Under the pieces are notes generated by a model, which searched no databases, had not been told where the DNA came from, and saw only the letters and a list, made by a program, of their open reading frames with translations. The translations under genes were made by a program, and so were the position numbers. Source: Piromyces finnis finn (Eukaryota > Fungi > Neocallimastigomycota). Taken from it: DNA of 64,000 nt. Positions 10,758-18,649 of this stretch are shown piece after piece. The DNA lies in the NCBI GenBank assembly GCA_002104945.1, contig MCFH01000016.1:310001-374000 (forward strand), given 5' to 3'. Positions within the stretch are counted from its first letter, which is position 1. Each line of letters opens with the position of its first letter.

Positions 10758-12163
10758 ATGCCATCAATTAAAAAGTTGTCATTATTAACTATTTTACCAT
10801 GGTTAGGTATATATAAAATGATTTATATAATATTTATTTTTAAAAGAATTAAAAAATAAATTATAATGATAACCCTTTTTTTTTTTATTTTTTGCAAAAA
10901 CAGTTGCAACTGAAAAAATATATTCATGTCAAAAAAACAATACAATTGCTTTAACAGTAATAGTTTATTTTAATTATATATATTTAATTTTTAATAAAAT
11001 TTATATCTACTTAAAATTATTTGAATCATTAATTTATTTGAAATAAAATTTAATTAGTTTGATGATGGACCATATAAATATACAAGTGAACTGATTGATT
11101 TATTAAATACTAAAAATATTAAAGCAACCTTTTTTATTAATGTTGGTAAGTAGTAAGTTATTTTTTTATCTCATTAAAATTATTATTATTAATGTATATA
11201 AATATTATCACAATAGAAAATTATTGGATTGACTTACCATATAATACAGAAAAACAAGCAGTTATAAAAAAAGCCTATGAAAGCGGACATCAAATTGCAT
11301 CACATACATGGGCTCATAGTATTCCAAGTGATGTTAATCAATTCGATGAAATGATGAAAAAAACTGATAATTGGATAAAAAGTGTAATTGGTCATAAACC
11401 ATCTTATTTCAGAGCTCCAAGAGGAGAATGCAATAGTGACTGTATTAATTATTTACAAGAAAAAGATTATAAACTCATTCAATGGGATGTAGATACAAAT
11501 GATGTAAGTAAATAATTTATAATTTAAGATAAATTATTACTCTTTTCAAAAAATTAAATTATATATTAATATAAATGAAAGTGGGATACATCTAACGGTG
11601 TGGATTATAGAGTTGGAAAAGCTAAAGAATTTTTATCTGAAAATTTTAATTATAAAAGAAGCAATTACTTAATATTAATGCATGATGTTTATAAACATAC
11701 CTTAGAAAAAATTGTTACTTGGATTGCTGATAATAAACCACTTGGTTATGAATTTGTTACTGTTGCCGAATGTTTAGGAGATAAATCATCGATGTATCGC
11801 TCAATTCAAGAAAATACAATTGATAAAACAAGTACAACAACTACTACTATTAATACAACATCTACTACTAAAACAACTACTTCAGTAGCTGAACCAACTA
11901 CGACATCTATTATTAATAATACTATCCCCGAAAATTCCACTTATAATAATAATAATGAAATTACAAATGACAATAATAATGTTAATAGTAATGAGTTAAC
12001 CAATAATAATAATTTAGACAGTTTTTATAATAATACTATAATGAATGATGAGAACTATGGAAATCTTAACTATGAAAGTTCATCAACATCGATAAACAGA
12101 CATTATAGCCTCTTATTATTGTTTTCATTAATTGCTATTCTTTTAAAATTATTTTATTTATAA
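10758..12163 (+). CDS. Polysaccharide/chitin deacetylase (CE4, NodB homology) with Thr/Asn-rich stalk and probable GPI signal
   Basis: Signal peptide MPSIKKLSLLTILPWL, spliced LTFDDGP (motif 1), KATFF, HTWAH (metal-binding His pair), FRAPRGE, WDVDTNDW and LMHD. A TTST-rich region and a hydrophobic C-terminal tail follow. Confidence 0.88.
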
Positions 12164-12721: not shown

Positions 12722-14895
12722 ATGCAAAATTTGAAAAGAGTAAATTATTTGAAAGTCTAATTAACACAAGAAAGAAAGGTATAATTTTTATTTATAGAAT
12801 AGTATTTATGTAAAGAATAATTAACGAATATTAATTAATGTTTTAAAAAAAATAATATATAGATATTGAAAAATATAACAATTTTAATTTAAAGGATGTA
12901 TTTGACGAATCATTTCCTCATGACATTCATTTCTTAATTAAAACAGTTCATAAATATAAGGGCTTAATAAAGGCAATAAAAAATAAAAAGGAAAAAAAAG
13001 GTTTAACATTAAGTAGGGAAGATAGTTCAAAATATTTATATAAAGTTCTAATTGTTTATTTACCTGTAATCAAAGAAAGATTAGTTAAAAATTATTTTAT
13101 TGAAAAAGAAAAAGTAAGAAAAATTCAAAAAAAAGTTAAGAGAGAAAAGGAAAAGAAATTGGCTAATTTCTTTGGTGAAAATCCAAGTGTTGATCCAATT
13201 AAAAAGCAAATATTTTCAATTACTATGAATTTAAATATTAAGGATTCAGCATTAAGTAATTCCAAATTATTAATTGATGAATCATTAATTTATAATGATG
13301 ATGATGCGGAATCTTCTAATGAAAGATTAAAAAGTACAAGTCAAATTATCTATGACGATTCTAGTTCTGAATATGAAAGCTCCCAATACCTTTCTTCCGA
13401 AGACTTTTTAACATTCAAAAAATATGTAAATTCTGAATTGAAGGATGAAGAAAATGATGTTGTTGATAGTCAAGAAATAAGAAATAGTAACTTTTTCACA
13501 ATGAAAAAGAAAGCTGATAAACTTCAACATTTCTTTGGTGACAAAATACAAATCAGTCAATTAAATGAGCAACAGGCACTTCAGAATGAAATTGGTGAAA
13601 ATACTTTAAATGCAATGAAATTCCATCAAACAAGCGGTTCAGTTGATTATCTTTCTAATATTAATAATTTATTTAATAATAAAGGAACTGTGAAATTTGG
13701 AAGAAGATCACAATCAATTGATAATTTACCGAAAACCGAAAATTTAATGGATAATTCTCAAAGAAAAATGATGGCAAAAAGAACAAATAAAATTAATTCA
13801 ATATTAGGAACTGTAATCAACGAAAAACTGACGGGAAGTGTAATAGAATCTGCTAATACATCAAATTCAAGAAAAGACCCAAACGAAGGAAGTTGTATTT
13901 TAAATAAATCAGTGTCATTTGTTGAAAATGCCTCAAATGATAGTAAAAGTCTAGATACTGATACTGAAGAAATGAGTTCTGAAAATGATTCAGATATAAA
14001 TTCAAGTAAAGGTAATATGATACAAATAAGAAGAATGAAGAAGCTGCATCAATTATTTGGAGAAAGAATAAATATGGAAACATTAATTAAACTTCAAATT
14101 AAAAAAAATGAAATCGAAAAGAAAAATAAAATTGAAAAGGGAATATTTACTGAATATGAAAGAAAAGATATTAGAAATAGATGTAAAAAATTGGAAGATA
14201 TATTTGGTACCGTTCCACCAACATTACTAGTTAATATAAATGCAAAGAATGCCGATTGTAATGCTTTTGTTAAACATAGAAATTCTATTATATCTTTATC
14301 AATGATGTTTACATATGATAAAGAAGTAGCTGATGTTATGGATATTATCTCAATAGATGGTGTAGATGGTGATGAGGGAAGTTTGACATCACAAATAAAT
14401 GAAGATAATTTAAATTCTAAGGAAGTGAACAAAACAAAATTAAAAAAATTAAGAAAATTCTTTGGAGATGATGCAGATCCTGCAAGCATCATTAATTCAA
14501 TAATTATATCTGACATAAGAAAATCGATAGATACAGATATCACCGATAAAGAACAGAAGAAACAACTAAATAAGGAATTAAATATTATTTGGGAAGATAT
14601 TCAAGAAAAGAGTAAACATTTTATGGAAACTATAACAGAAGATGATACAATTAAAATAAGTGATAATAATAATGAAAAATCAGACAACTTTTTAAAATCT
14701 ACTACTCAATCATTGAAAAAGTACACATCATTTGATTTAGGAAAATCAAAGAAGAAATCTAATATAAGTTCATATCAAATTAAAAACCTTTGTAATGAAG
14801 ATTTATATTCAGATAGCGAGGGTGAAAGTGATCAATATGATTCTAAATGGAGAGATTATGTTGTTGAATGGTTAAAAACTAATCATAAAATATAA
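12722..14895 (+). CDS. Hypothetical protein with six KLxx(F/L)FG-like motifs
   Basis: Stop-free frame from about 12895 (acceptor AG|GAT GTA) to TAA at 14895, covering the 578-aa ORF. The start at 12722 (MQNLKR|GTAAAT) is tentative. Confidence 0.75.
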
Positions 14896-15448
14896 AAATA
14901 TGTTGTTAAAATTTTATACATTAAAGTTTTAACTACTCATAATTTTAAATATTAAATAAAAAAAGTATAATTATTATACTCTTTATTATTTTATCATTTA
15001 TACATTTATATATAATATATATATTTTGAATAAAAAATATTATAATAAAAATTTTCTTTTTTTATTACATATATAATAAAAAATTTAAGTTTTTCACTTT
15101 TTATTTATTAATTTATTTTTTTATATTCTAAAGTATTTTATGTAAGTATATACATTATTGAATAAAAAACATATCAAAATATATAATTTTTTATATAATA
15201 CATTATATGAATTATTTAAATAATTCTAAAATATGATAATTTTTAAATAAAATTAAAGAAGAAAATATAATATAAAATCATATATACATATATATTTATA
15301 TATTATTTTACTTTAAAAAAAAACTACAAAAATATACTTATTTGATTAGAAATATAAAAATAAAATCAAGATAATAACATTTAAATTTGTATTTATATAA
15401 ATTATAATATATTTAAATTAATATATTACATTTACTGTAATCAATTAT

Positions 15449-17752
15449 TTACTGTATTATATTATTATGTGAATTAACAATTTCAATTACAGTATAAGGA
15501 TAGTTATTTATCATGTATGAATTATTGTTGTTGTTATTAATATTAATATTATTATTATTTATATTAGTATTATTATTAGTATTATTATTACTACTATTAC
15601 TATTATTGTTTATATTAGTATTATTACTATCATTATTATCGTTGTTGTTATTATTATTATTAATATTATTATTATTATTATTATTGTTGTTGTTGTTGTT
15701 ATTATTATTATTATAGTCATTATTATTAATATTATTGTTACTATTTATATTATTATTATTATCATTATTATTATTATTTATATTTATATTTGCATTATTA
15801 TTATTATTACTATTATTATTATTTATTCTTTGATTCTCTATTGCTAAATTTAAGTTTCCTGAATTAACAATTCTATTTGAGTTATTAAAATTATTTATAT
15901 TATTTAATGATTCTATTTGATGATAAGATAATGAATAATTATTTGGAATTATTCGTTGATTAGAATAAGATTTTATATCTTCTGAGTTTTGATTTAAAAC
16001 CCTGAATTGTGAATAATAGGCAGGTGATGGAAAATATTTTTGGGGCATTCCATTATTTGTTCTATCATTACTATACCATTGATATTGAATATCATTTGAT
16101 GAAAAATATGATGATGTTGTCTGAGCAGCTGAATAATTCGAATAATGTCCTTCATATTGCGAGCTTTGTGATATATTATGTGAATAATAGTTATTTTGAT
16201 TATAATTATTGAAATTAATAAAATTATTTATTTGTTGTCCATAATTTGGATTCATATTATTGAATTGATCAGTATTAATATTAAAGTATGTTTCTGGATT
16301 TGTTTGTGTAACATCATTTGAATTTGAATATTGATATGTTTGATAATATTGATTTGTAGTGGCAGTCGTAGATGTCATTATTTGAGTTGATGTATTCGGC
16401 AATCTTCTTTGATAATTTTGTGTTAATCTTGATGATGTAACTAATGATGAAGCAGGATAATTAGAATTAGAATAATTATTAGGTGTTGTTATGTAGTTTT
16501 GTTGATTGGGCATTGAATAACCTATACTATTTATTGAGGAATTGGAATTTATAACATTTGAACCAACATAATTTTCAGATAAGAGGCTATTATTACTAAT
16601 GGTATGAATACTTGTCATTGAAGAAGAATTAATATTTACATTTGATGAAGATGCATTATTCGATGTATGAGAAATACTTATAGTATTAGAAGTTGGGGTT
16701 GCAACCAATGTTGAGTTTGATTGTAAAGAAGAAGAAAAATTACAAAAATTCTGATTTTTATTTTTATCTAATGGACTTTGGGTTTGTGATGTAACAGAAT
16801 AATTTTGATTATTACAGTTTGTTATAGTATATATTGATGCACCAGTATCATCAATTTGCAATCCGGCAATATCGGAAAGAGTATTATTATTACTACTATC
16901 TATTAATGTTGCTGTACTGCTATATGATGGAATATATTTTTGGTTTATATTTGATAACTCACTAATATTAGATGAAGAACCAGAATTGGGTATTATTAAT
17001 TTAGATACATTATTAACATTTTGAATTTGTTTCCCTGAACTATTTCCATCTTGTTTTTGTATAATCTTCGAGTCTTTTTTATTTTTATTATTTCTATCAC
17101 CATTATTATTTGATTTAATGCTTGATATTTTCGAAGGATCGACAAGTTTTTTTTCAATCATTTCATCCCAAGTATTTTGAATGATAGTACTTGTAATTAA
17201 AGAAGGATCTTCACCATATTTATTTAATACTGTACTCCATAATAATCTAATTGTTTGTAAATCTTTGGTACATCTTCTAAGTGTTCTACATTGTCTTTCA
17301 CCAAAAGGAAGTATATGAAAACCTTCTAATTGCTAATAATAATGAATTTAAAACAAAATATTTTTGCTTTTTATTAATATCATTTTATTAATAATAAATA
17401 AAATATTAAAATATTGCTAATTATTACATTTAAAACTCGAGATGCATCGACAAATCGATAAACAGAGGCTCTTGAAAGCTTAAAAACTTCTTTAAAATAT
17501 TGTTCCATTGTAGAATGCTTGGCTTTATATAATTTCTTTGAAATAATTTCTTGCATAGCCATAGCTGTTTTTCTAAATCTTTCTTGCTTTTCTTCCCTTT
17601 TAATATTTAAAATTTTCAAAATTAATTTATATTACTGCTACATATATATTATAATATTAATAATATTCTTACCCTCCATGACCTTCTCCTGATCTTATTA
17701 TACTTCTATCAATAACTTGTTCAGCTGAGAATAATGCATTGTTGACGTTCAT
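15449..17752 (-). CDS. Putative DNA-binding protein: prokaryote-like HTH domain plus a long N/S/Q/Y-rich low-complexity tail, about 710 aa, 3 exons
   Basis: Exons 17752-17673, 17596-17428 and 17332-15449 join in frame at GT-AG junctions. N-terminus: ...SIIRSGEGHGGEEKQERFRKTAMAMQEIISKKLYKAKHSTMEQYFKEVFKLSRASVYRFVDASRVLNQLEGFHILPFGERQCRTL...LWSTVL...ITSTIIQNTW. Confidence 0.75.
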
Positions 17753-18649
17753 ATTATATTAATATATTAATATATAACTTATGGATTTATTGATTTATTA
17801 TTTAAATTATTATATATTTATATAAATTAATTTTTCCTAAAATTCTCTATATACAGTTTAACTTAGTAATTATATTCTTTCAATTTATAAATTTTTTAGG
17901 AATCAAAAACTAAAAAAATAAAACCTAGTAATATTTGATTAATATTACACTTTGTTTTAATTTTTATATTATAGAATTAATATCTTATTAAGTTGTTATT
18001 GGTATCTTTCAATTTTATTAGTATAGTTTTAAAAATAATAATAATAATAATAATAATTATTATTCGTTATATCAAAAAATTACAATTTTAAAAGTAATAT
18101 ATATTCTTTTCCATTATTTTTTTATCTATGAAATAAAAATATCAATAAATTAAATGACATACATATATGTCAATATTATACAAATAATAAAGATAGTTTT
18201 TTGTTATATTACAAAATTTTAAATAAAAAATAAATTATAGTAGAAAAAAAAAAGTTATTTGATCATGAATATTAAAAGTTTTACAAATCGAAAATATATT
18301 ATTTATATTTAAAAATAAAAATATTAAATATATATTTAAATTAAAGTGGTATTCATAGTTATAAAATAGATTTCATAAATAAAAAATAGTAAAAATAATA
18401 TAAAATCAGAAACTAAAATATTATTTTTATTCATTTGGTATTTTTAAATTTAAAAATTTTAGATTTTTTTAATTTAGAATGTGCTAATGTTAATTATATT
18501 AAAAGAATTACAATTTATAAAAATAAATATATATTTAATATTACTTTTTATTTCTTTTAGTTATTTTTAAATTTATTTTTCTATTTTTTTTTAATTTTCT
18601 TTTAATATGTATATTAATATATTTCATAACTTGCAAATTATTTGAACTC

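Follow-up and report, generated by a model that had tools for sequence, protein, structure and literature searches.

Our analysis identified the Piromyces finnis gene BCR36DRAFT_411593 as a member of an old, undescribed family of zoosporic fungi, which among the best 150 of 905 relatives has so far been seen only in flagellated fungi. As judged from sequence comparison, the N-terminal domain of its product shares ancestry with a domain that is widespread in bacteria, archaea and phages. The domain was captured before at least four zoosporic phyla diverged, and the capture is not specific to P. finnis. We infer a role in DNA binding and transcription, and consider the protein to be probably a sequence-specific nuclear regulator.

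The gene lies on the minus strand (17752-15449) of the window, the stretch of 64,000 nucleotides of contig MCFH01000016.1 that was analysed, and comprises three exons encoding 710 amino acids. Joining 17752-17673, 17596-17428 and 17332-15449 (stop included) yields an open frame of 710 codons, and the three in-frame exons with the peptide quoted in the earlier note were reproduced letter for letter. RNA data bear out both its transcription and the reconstructed splicing: spliced contigs from four public RNA runs, belonging to three studies, confirmed the predicted junctions 17673/17596 (three runs) and 17428/17332 (four runs), and splicing leaves the frame intact. A single RNA contig is unbroken across 15833-17332. 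The contigs break at 15517-15832, i.e., around a poly-Asn tract, and for the C-terminal motif run X1 shows contig depth at 15387-15476. The N-terminus, MNVNNALFSAEQ, is common to orthologues from three other genera or strains. The parts of the gene are the following:

17753..17891, minus strand: 5' UTR, minimum extent (at least 139 nt), as a spliced 1925-nt contig from run X1 reaches 17891
17673..17752, minus strand: exon 1, start codon at 17752-17750, residues 1-26 and two bases of codon 27, covered by spliced contigs
17597..17672, minus strand: intron 1, 76 nt, GT..AG, phase 2, at the N-terminal domain edge, spliced out in the contigs from X1, X2 and X4
17428..17596, minus strand: exon 2, residues 27 (last base) to 83, first domain half including the helix-turn-helix (HTH)
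17428..17508, minus strand: HTH proper, with a first helix at 57-65, the turn KLS and the recognition helix at 69-84, whose residue 84 is encoded by exon 3
17333..17427, minus strand: intron 2, 95 nt, GT..AG, phase 0, after residue 83 where the recognition helix ends, skipped in contigs of all four runs
17132..17332, minus strand: second domain half, residues 84-150, containing LP..ER..R.L and LW, aligned to the bacterial profile by hhalign
15836..17131, minus strand: charge-poor tail rich in Asn, Ser, Gln and Tyr, residues 151-582, with many invariant islands
15521..15835, minus strand: poly-Asn tract, residues 583-687, 74% Asn, P. finnis only
15449..15520, minus strand: conserved C-terminal motif NNYPYTVI.IVNS.NNIIQ, residues 688-710, and stop, nearly invariant in six orthologues

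The earlier note had placed two introns inside the domain. This is true of intron 2, but intron 1 lies outside: it interrupts codon 27, and the bacterial similarity starts two residues further downstream.

Residues 28-150 form a compact domain of ∼123 residues. Scans of the fungal domain against Pfam, NCBIfam and PHROGs models or PDB sequences gave nothing significant, and the exons scanned one by one against Pfam produced only noise. None of 54 full-length fungal family members has a Pfam hit, to a DNA-binding domain or any other, and a literature search for six family locus tags found no paper mentioning them. Membership of a described fungal transcription factor family was thus not found, and the expectation that Pfam-based transcription factor lists miss the family was borne out, as it has no Pfam model. 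An exhaustive HMMER search with a Neocallimastigomycota-only profile against a library of 1.84 billion proteins returned 905 relatives at E ≤ 1e-3, including 134 at E ≤ 1e-10. Within the best 150 of these 905, from which the taxonomy was read, all named eukaryotic matches are zoosporic fungi, while the other recognisable matches are bacterial, archaeal or from phages. The family occurs in Chytridiomycota, Monoblepharidomycota, Neocallimastigomycota, Blastocladiomycota and Aphelida, with Batrachochytrium, Spizellomyces, Allomyces and Catenaria among the genera. The apparent lack of members in Mucoromycota, Zoopagomycota, Dikarya and non-fungal eukaryotes refers to the named matches among these best 150 of 905. 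Gut fungi carry several family paralogues per genome, and P. finnis also encodes a short paralogue.

The similarity to prokaryotic proteins described in the earlier note was recovered at profile level. Alignment of the fungal with the bacterial profile by hhalign gave a probability of 99.6% (E 1.9e-24, 114 columns, 31% identity), and the Neocallimastigomycota-only profile reached the bacterial-type P0137, P0145, P0146 and P0153 with E ∼1e-10 to 1e-11. In bacterial and archaeal GTDB genomes the fungal profile matched 81 of 82 domain-bearing ORFs in 80 genomes (best E 6.7e-22), and the domain-bearing genomes span at least 16 phyla. The bacterial consensus given there agrees with the computed one. 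The motifs LY(R/K), TFE.Y, SR..AYR, LP.NE.QAR.L and W follow in this order in the consensus of the fungal family profile (A2), the broad bacterial alignment (A3), the combined fungal and bacterial alignment (A4) and the narrower alignment (A5) with which the bacterial and archaeal genome loci were gathered. Conservation reaches 90% or more over fungi and prokaryotes at eight positions (F34, Y50, Y60, P92, E95, R99, L101 and W115). The family had also been described as abundant in cyanobacteria; these contribute only 6 of the 73 genome loci with a near-full-length domain, whereas Verrucomicrobiota (19) and Actinomycetota (13) lead. P0137 alone as query retrieved no related genome loci. The bacterial domain matches six PHROG families, and although tblastn with this domain found no matches in the INPHARED phage collection, PHROGs and BFVD do hold relatives.

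In prokaryotes the domain is usually joined to the N-terminus of an N6-adenine DNA methyltransferase or located beside one. Many relatives carry it at the N-terminus of an MT-A70 or Dam (PF05869) enzyme; it also occurs as small stand-alone proteins, one of which adjoins an N6_N4 methyltransferase in an island of methylase and restriction genes. A ParB_N-domain-MT-A70 architecture was discarded, as an HMM check showed that P0269, P0273, P0277 and P0280 do not contain the domain and had been matched through MT-A70 only. Iyer, Zhang and Aravind described a 'ParB-type HTH' fused to methylases of the Dam type, with examples from chlorophytes, chytrids and the ParB-Tls loci of phages (Iyer et al. 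2016, PMC4738411), and the unnamed prokaryotic methyltransferase-linked HTH domain is probably this 'ParB-type HTH'. It shows the same motif order as the fungal domain, KLY(K/R), (T/S).E.Y, SRxxxYR, LP..ER..R.L and W, and the same predicted fold (BFVD TM up to 0.74). The fungal proteins differ from these relatives in having no methyltransferase, in their spliceosomal introns and long disordered-type tails, and in forming a separate group in the tree.

Due to the association with three different adenine methyltransferase families, fused or adjacent, the fungal domain could have kept a link to adenine methylation and serve 6mA as a subunit for DNA targeting, reading or adaptation, instead of being an ordinary transcription factor for specific genes. 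The high 6mA content of zoosporic fungi (PMC12019607, PMC12695648) and the chytrid fusion of a ParB-type HTH to a Dam-type methylase (Iyer et al. 2016) are in agreement with this. However, none of the fungal hits has an MT-A70-like region and all 54 full-length members are devoid of a methyltransferase domain. Moreover, the distribution of the family does not follow 6mA: it is present in the Blastocladiomycota Allomyces and Catenaria, a phylum reported to lack Mta1/Mta9 and with reduced 6mA in Catenaria (PMC12019607), and no member from the 6mA-rich Mucoromycota is found among the best 150 of 905 relatives. P1 and P2 (AMTP1/2), the known DNA-binding partners in the 6mA methyltransferase complex MTA1c, are Myb/homeobox proteins, which PMC12019607 delimits by Pfam domains of the Myb-like or homeobox type, and not members of the present family. 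We therefore regard the methylation link as unlikely, even if it is the best of the alternatives. P1 and P2, which are functionally linked to MT-A70 enzymes, resemble the fungal family as helical proteins of a DNA-binding type, putative in the case of the family, from 6mA-rich early-diverging fungi. An identity of the family with P1 or P2 was rejected, since its members contain no Myb or homeobox domain and occur in Mta1/Mta9-less Blastocladiomycota.

An HTH in the domain, with SRxxxYR starting the recognition helix, had been suggested from sequence and is now present in the predicted fold. The AlphaFold model is all-helical with an HTH (pLDDT 95.7), and the top Foldseek match is Noc (probability 0.93, TM 0.51). 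According to these comparisons the fold is nearest to phage proteins (TM up to 0.74 with E 2.6e-4 for BFVD phage models, up to 0.83 for ESM Atlas phage clusters) and moderately near to the DNA-binding domains of KorB, ParB and Noc. The 123-residue domain is soluble-looking and confidently modelled, and has a net charge of +6. At sequence level, the Pfam model HTH_ParB (PF17762) for the ParB/Spo0J/Noc/KorB/SopB group gave no match to the fungal domain and weak, sub-threshold matches to 6 of the 55 bacterial members (E 7e-4 at best), and the fungal proteins lack both the N-terminal CTPase domain and the C-terminal dimerisation domain of ParB proteins. The search of PDB sequences with profiles A2 and A4 returned no ParB, Noc or KorB chain; with the bacterial profile, ERHARAL of Noc aligned with the E..AR.L motif of the family at E 0.29. 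DUF3102 (PF11300) and Plasmid_parti_N (PF01672) likewise gave weak Pfam matches, below curated thresholds, in 6 of 55 bacterial members, and neighbours of the domain by ESM Atlas features or by BFVD structure bear the same labels.

Slightly less likely again than the methylation link is that the helical domain is a protein-protein scaffold which no longer binds DNA, the protein taking part in a condensate or some other assembly unrelated to transcription. Against this, the N-terminal half of the model superposes on bona fide HTH DNA-binding domains with an rmsd of 1.8 Å, the basic E..R.L helix, which lines up with the motif of Noc and ParB, is among the positions of highest conservation between the kingdoms, and the prokaryotic relatives are joined to DNA-modifying enzymes.

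The tail of ∼560 residues was described before as rich in Asn, Ser, Gln and Tyr, and the computed composition (N 30%, S 15.5%, Q 6%, Y 6%) agrees. Residues 151-582 contain 19.9% N, 53% N+Q+S+Y and 9.7% K+R+D+E; for comparison with the 19.9% N of the tail before the poly-Asn tract, the 14 window ORFs that reach 200 aa have a median of 9.5%. With its long N/Q/S/Y bias and few charged residues, the tail has a prion-like (Q/N-rich) composition. The protein does not end in poly-Asn, as had been stated, but in a C-terminal motif of 23 residues, conserved across genera, which comes after the 105-residue Asn tract. The tract, absent in 5 of 5 aligned orthologues, is the sole species-specific part of the tail. 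Residues 151-710 are 63-76% identical to the orthologues of Piromyces sp. E2, Anaeromyces and Neocallimastix, which is above expectation for a purely compositional domain, and by this comparison the tail keeps its sequence rather than drifting freely as low complexity.

The position and phase of intron 2 are the same in the short P. finnis paralogue and in Spizellomyces, Batrachochytrium, Gonapodya, Allomyces and Paraphysoderma. Since this position is common to four fungal phyla, the capture is ancient and not recent. The fungal copies form a single group in the tree (SH-aLRT 99 and 97; tree unrooted). It is the breadth of distribution alone, the tree being unrooted, that suggests a transfer from prokaryote to fungus. 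The domestication of a prokaryotic module proposed in the earlier note is supported, and none of the four refuting conditions named there held, but the event was neither recent nor restricted to P. finnis. Codon comparisons among the anaerobic gut fungi show extreme purifying selection on the domain: 39 synonymous and no non-synonymous differences separate Piromyces from Anaeromyces, and 33 synonymous and 2 non-synonymous differences separate it from Neocallimastix. The exon 2 protein is 100% identical in Anaeromyces and Neocallimastix despite 17-19 synonymous codon differences. Synteny is conserved in three genera, in which the gene lies beside the same convergent, RGS-annotated neighbour.

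These data also bear on the origin of the gene. It is improbable that the gene is part of a fungal mobile element or virus, or a recent domesticate of one, and serves that element, for instance in its partition or packaging, instead of regulating the host. Prokaryotic relatives typical of phages and mobile islands and the several paralogues per genome would fit such an origin, but the conserved synteny in three genera, the ancient intron position, a dN/dS near zero and the lack of any transposase, integrase or repeat evidence speak against it. Despite the resemblance to bacterial and phage proteins, bacterial contamination, recent horizontal transfer or a mis-assembled pseudogene is rejected with near certainty because of the spliceosomal introns removed in RNA, the synteny and the synonymous divergence, in a fungal window of 19.6% GC with orthologues in four gut-fungal assemblies that differ synonymously only and relatives in five zoosporic lineages.

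We propose that an ancestor of the fungi took over a DNA-binding module of bacterial or phage origin but not the methyltransferase attached to it. Specific DNA would be bound by the domain through two helices, the recognition helix RASVYRFVDASRVLNQ and a basic one, ERQCRTLRR, in a manner similar to KorB, ParB and Noc. Short interaction motifs in the long, charge-poor and conserved Asn/Ser/Tyr-rich tail may recruit the transcription or chromatin machinery, and the protein would be one of several paralogous regulators per genome. The fungal APSES domain, which derives from KilA-N, is an example of a eukaryotic transcription factor domain that originated from a DNA-binding module of phages or mobile elements. 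The family described here follows the same pattern of a captured module, paralogue expansion and low-complexity effector regions, but differs from APSES in fold and family and in being seen in flagellated fungi only.

The catalogues of transcription factors in early-diverging fungi rest on Pfam domain lists, and the family is absent from them because it has no Pfam model. A domain that stays 100% identical as protein across genera while ∼30% of its codons change synonymously must have an essential role. The common intron position dates the eukaryotic capture of a phage or bacterial DNA-binding module, and the case bears on the route by which eukaryotes acquired the machinery of adenine methylation and the parts that target it to DNA. 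If the absence from non-flagellated fungi holds, the family would be a lineage marker whose loss coincides with that of the zoospore. A bolder scenario, to which we assign a low likelihood, is a DNA-binding family specific to flagellated fungi, with the present protein as its founding member, that arose from a targeting module of phage or bacterial adenine methyltransferases, was captured before the phyla split and was lost once with the flagellum; its paralogues may then be master regulators of the zoospore life cycle or readers or targeters of 6mA.

The gene lies on the minus strand of the window, whose GC content is 19.6%, and its spliced frame stays open for 710 codons.

Features of the gene and of its convergent neighbour
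17752, minus strand: start codon ATG, opening the three-exon gene
17752-17673, minus strand: exon 1 (sequence, spliced contigs)
17672-17597, minus strand: intron 1 (76 nt, GT..AG, phase 2)
17596-17428, minus strand: exon 2 (sequence, spliced contigs)
17427-17333, minus strand: intron 2 (95 nt, GT..AG, phase 0)
17332-15449, minus strand: exon 3, with the stop codon inside
15521-15835: poly-Asn tract (105 codons, 74% Asn), a P. finnis-specific insertion
12856-14892, plus strand: convergent neighbour, KLxxFFG-motif ORF (with the loci L090, L091 and L002)

Expression is documented by contigs of the locus in four public runs from three studies. Positions 17333-17427 are absent from the contigs in all four runs and 17597-17672 in three (X1, X2 and X4), both with plus-strand ends CT..AC, i.e., GT..AG on the gene strand, and since the genome retains both introns, these contigs are RNA-derived. 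The junctions 17673/17596 and 17428/17332, read from the sequence alone in the earlier note, are thereby confirmed to the nucleotide, and the spliced translation returns the peptide given there letter for letter. A contig of 1925 nt extends into the 5' UTR up to 17891. When the beginning of exon 3 was used as a word-index query, it retrieved P. finnis BCR36DRAFT_411593, identical to the window product over its first 503 residues. Orthologues were retrieved from Piromyces sp. E2, Anaeromyces robustus and Neocallimastix lanati, and those genera also have a shorter paralogue of ∼355 aa. In the deposited P. finnis model, of 510 aa, a splice site placed after residue 503 (QYQWY, window 16073) leads to a different short C-terminus, which is contradicted by the 1925-nt contig, unbroken from 17332 to 15833. 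In three runs, RNA contigs pass position 16073 without a break, and the longer reading (window 15449-16073) is the one kept in the orthologues. The 3' end of the deposited model looks wrong, the true product having ∼710 aa. RNA contig assembly is interrupted at the repeat 15517-15832; the poly-Asn tract is likely kept in the mRNA, since it stays in frame and a conserved C-terminal motif follows downstream.

Residues 151-582 contain 19.9% N (median across the window's 14 long ORFs: 9.5%), 53% N+Q+S+Y and 9.7% charged residues. The designation of this tail as prion-like therefore holds for its composition, biased to N/Q/S/Y and poor in charges; its sequence is nonetheless conserved, with 63-76% identity between genera, numerous invariant islands and a C-terminal motif that hardly varies. 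Because of this conservation, the tail would carry specific motifs. In all five aligned orthologues, including that of Piromyces sp. E2, NQR(M/L) is directly joined to NNNN(S/T)Y without the poly-Asn tract.

Residues 1-160 of the long and the short paralogue gave only sub-threshold noise against Pfam, NCBIfam, PHROGs and PDB sequences, and no Pfam domain was detected in 8 long fungal relatives or in another 54 of full length. As the claim depends on remote relatives, an exhaustive HMMER search was chosen, with a profile (A1) of seven Neocallimastigomycota sequences only. It matched 905 proteins with E≤1e-3, 134 with E≤1e-10 and 19 with E≤1e-30. The taxonomic reading rests on the named proteins among the best 150 of the 905 matches, in which all named eukaryotes are zoosporic fungi.

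Named fungal members among the best 150 of 905 matches
Chytridiomycota, many orders: Spizellomyces, Powellomyces, Geranomyces, Rhizophlyctis, Borealophlyctis, Polychytrium, Cladochytrium, Nowakowskiella, Chytriomyces, Rhizoclosmatium, Obelidium, Batrachochytrium, Boothiomyces, Blyttiomyces, Quaeritorhiza, Phlyctochytrium, others
Monoblepharidomycota: Gonapodya
Neocallimastigomycota: members present
Blastocladiomycota: Allomyces, Catenaria, Blastocladiella, Paraphysoderma, Sorochytrium
Aphelida: Amoeboaphelidium
Dikarya, Mucoromycota, Zoopagomycota: none (provisional)

At least four distinct members (266351, 326817, 272567, 296148) occur in Anaeromyces robustus alone, and an expanded AT-rich, Asn-rich metagenomic subgroup clusters beside the Neocallimastigomycota sequences. 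The relative P0014 from Phlyctochytrium arcticum (218 aa) carries tandem copies of the domain, one partial (1-74) and one full (81-197).

Four of these best 150 matches clearly look like prokaryotic proteins (P0137, P0145, P0146 and P0153; E ∼1e-10 to 1e-11). In P0145 the domain is followed by an MT-A70 methyltransferase, and most of the 2903 relatives found by word-index search with P0145 share this architecture. P0146 is a stand-alone domain on a 31-kb bacterial contig (L001). Over the 16.6 kb examined, it adjoins a gene for an N6_N4 methyltransferase, and its surroundings include a cytosine-5 methylase, all parts of a type I restriction-modification system and numerous small genes lacking annotation; such gene content would make this stretch a typical mobile or defence island. 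Profile-profile comparison of 67 fungal sequences (A2, mean column identity 39%) with 55 bacterial ones (A3) gave a probability of 99.6% and an E value of 1.9e-24 over 114 columns with 31% identity. The similarity to a prokaryotic family proposed in the earlier note is thus borne out, and the consensus given there is essentially the bacterial consensus derived here. A GTDB scan with one genome per species yielded 145 loci, of which 80 were kept and 73 carry a near-full-length domain; the latter span at least 16 phyla, two of them archaeal, with Verrucomicrobiota (19 loci), Actinomycetota (13), Chloroflexota and Cyanobacteriota (6 each), Bacteroidota and Thermodesulfobacteriota (5 each). The fungal profile alone recognised 81 of 82 domain-bearing ORFs of the GTDB loci (best E 6.7e-22), and of ten ORFs scanned, two end in a Dam (PF05869) methyltransferase, whereas the C-termini of the others could not be assigned to any family. 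A candidate architecture of ParB_N, the domain and MT-A70 was rejected; the ParB_N proteins lack the domain. Phage relatives occur in six PHROG families, among BFVD models (best TM 0.74, E 2.6e-4; DUF3102-labelled proteins included) and in ESM Atlas phage clusters (TM 0.83). One ESM Atlas phage cluster, of DUF5131 (PF07505) proteins of ∼442 aa, contains a very similar structural module (TM 0.83 by query), by its predicted structure another phage architecture for the domain.

Structure prediction from a shallow alignment reached a middling pLDDT of 81, that from 122 fungal and bacterial sequences (A4) a pLDDT of 95.7 and a pTM of 0.87, with all five models at 94.9 or more. The model is all-helical (helices 27-46, 49-52, 57-65, 69-84, 95-104, 108-122, 131-143 and 149-154, protein numbering), and from this layout the predicted HTH consists of helix 57-65, the turn KLS and helix 69-84. 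An HTH fold had been anticipated, and the SRxxxYR segment, previously taken for the recognition helix, forms the start of helix 69-84, the predicted recognition helix. Whole-domain structural matches (96-109 residues) comprise the Raf1 alpha domain (7.7, 6.7), KorB (7.0, 6.1), ParB (6.1), SopB (6.1), Spo0J (5.8) and P1 ParB (5.3), and Foldseek ranked Noc first (probability 0.93, TM 0.51, E 0.36). The most recurrent Pfam families in the bacterial members were HTH_ParB (6/55, best E 7e-4) and DUF3102 (6/55, best E 3.8e-3), and the E..AR.L helix of the bacterial profile aligned with the ERHARAL helix of Noc (E 0.29). This sequence support is weak but points in the same direction as the structure; on balance we lean towards a ParB/KorB-type HTH.

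In domain trees one branch separates all 67 fungal rows from the prokaryotic ones (55 rows with SH-aLRT 99, then 82 rows with SH-aLRT 97), which is consistent with the fungal family having arisen once. The trees are unrooted, and we infer a transfer from prokaryotes to fungi from breadth, the prokaryotic side comprising many phyla, phages and several architectures and the eukaryotic side a single lineage. With proteins mapped onto their loci, a phase-0 intron just after the recognition helix (...VL[K/N/T] | [Q/D/E]L...) proved to be widely shared: besides this gene and its short P. finnis paralogue, members from Spizellomyces, Batrachochytrium, Gonapodya, Allomyces and Paraphysoderma have it. 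A spliced eukaryotic gene therefore existed before Chytridiomycota, Monoblepharidomycota, Neocallimastigomycota and Blastocladiomycota split. The aphelid locus L006 (Amoeboaphelidium protococcarum) lacks this intron and has one of 65 nt a few codons upstream, inside SRAQ|VYRF. Residues 28-150 are identical between Piromyces and Anaeromyces (100%; 39 synonymous and 0 non-synonymous codon differences) and 98.4% identical to Neocallimastix (33 and 2). Differences that are nearly all synonymous point to extreme purifying selection on the domain within gut fungi, and contamination or recent exchange is ruled out by this almost purely synonymous divergence.

The same convergent neighbour is retained in three genera, the KLxxFFG-motif ORF being orthologous to the neighbours of the Anaeromyces and Neocallimastix orthologues. 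That of Anaeromyces is annotated with an RGS domain, which was not detected in the three window ORFs scanned. A weakly similar neighbour with an RGS domain also lies at the locus of the short P. finnis paralogue, so gene and neighbour may have been duplicated together in a segmental duplication. Further along, the plus-strand ORF 11192-11512 clearly matches polysaccharide deacetylase (PF01522, E 9.4e-14) and probably represents a single exon of a gene for a chitin or xylan deacetylase.

The main rival reading of function, a role tied to adenine methylation, would agree with the prokaryotic domain-methyltransferase fusions and with the ParB-type HTH-Dam fusion reported in chytrids (Iyer et al. 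2016, PMC4738411), but the family occurs in Blastocladiomycota, in which Mta1/Mta9 are missing, and among the best 150 of 905 matches is not seen in Mucoromycota, which possess them. P1 and P2, the partners already known, are of the Myb/homeobox type (PMC12019607; PMC12695648). The superfamily (HTH, probably ParB-type) is already known, as is the pattern by which a phage or bacterial DNA-binding module becomes a lineage-specific eukaryotic regulator. The nearest prior description concerns those fusions with Dam-type methylases (Iyer et al. 2016). The stand-alone fungal family is absent from Pfam and was not found in the literature searched. Sequence-specific DNA binding and a regulatory role are both probable, given the predicted HTH geometry, a basic helix that is conserved, the domain's net positive charge (+6), the DNA-enzyme context of the prokaryotic relatives and the typical transcription-factor layout of a DNA-binding domain with a disordered effector region.
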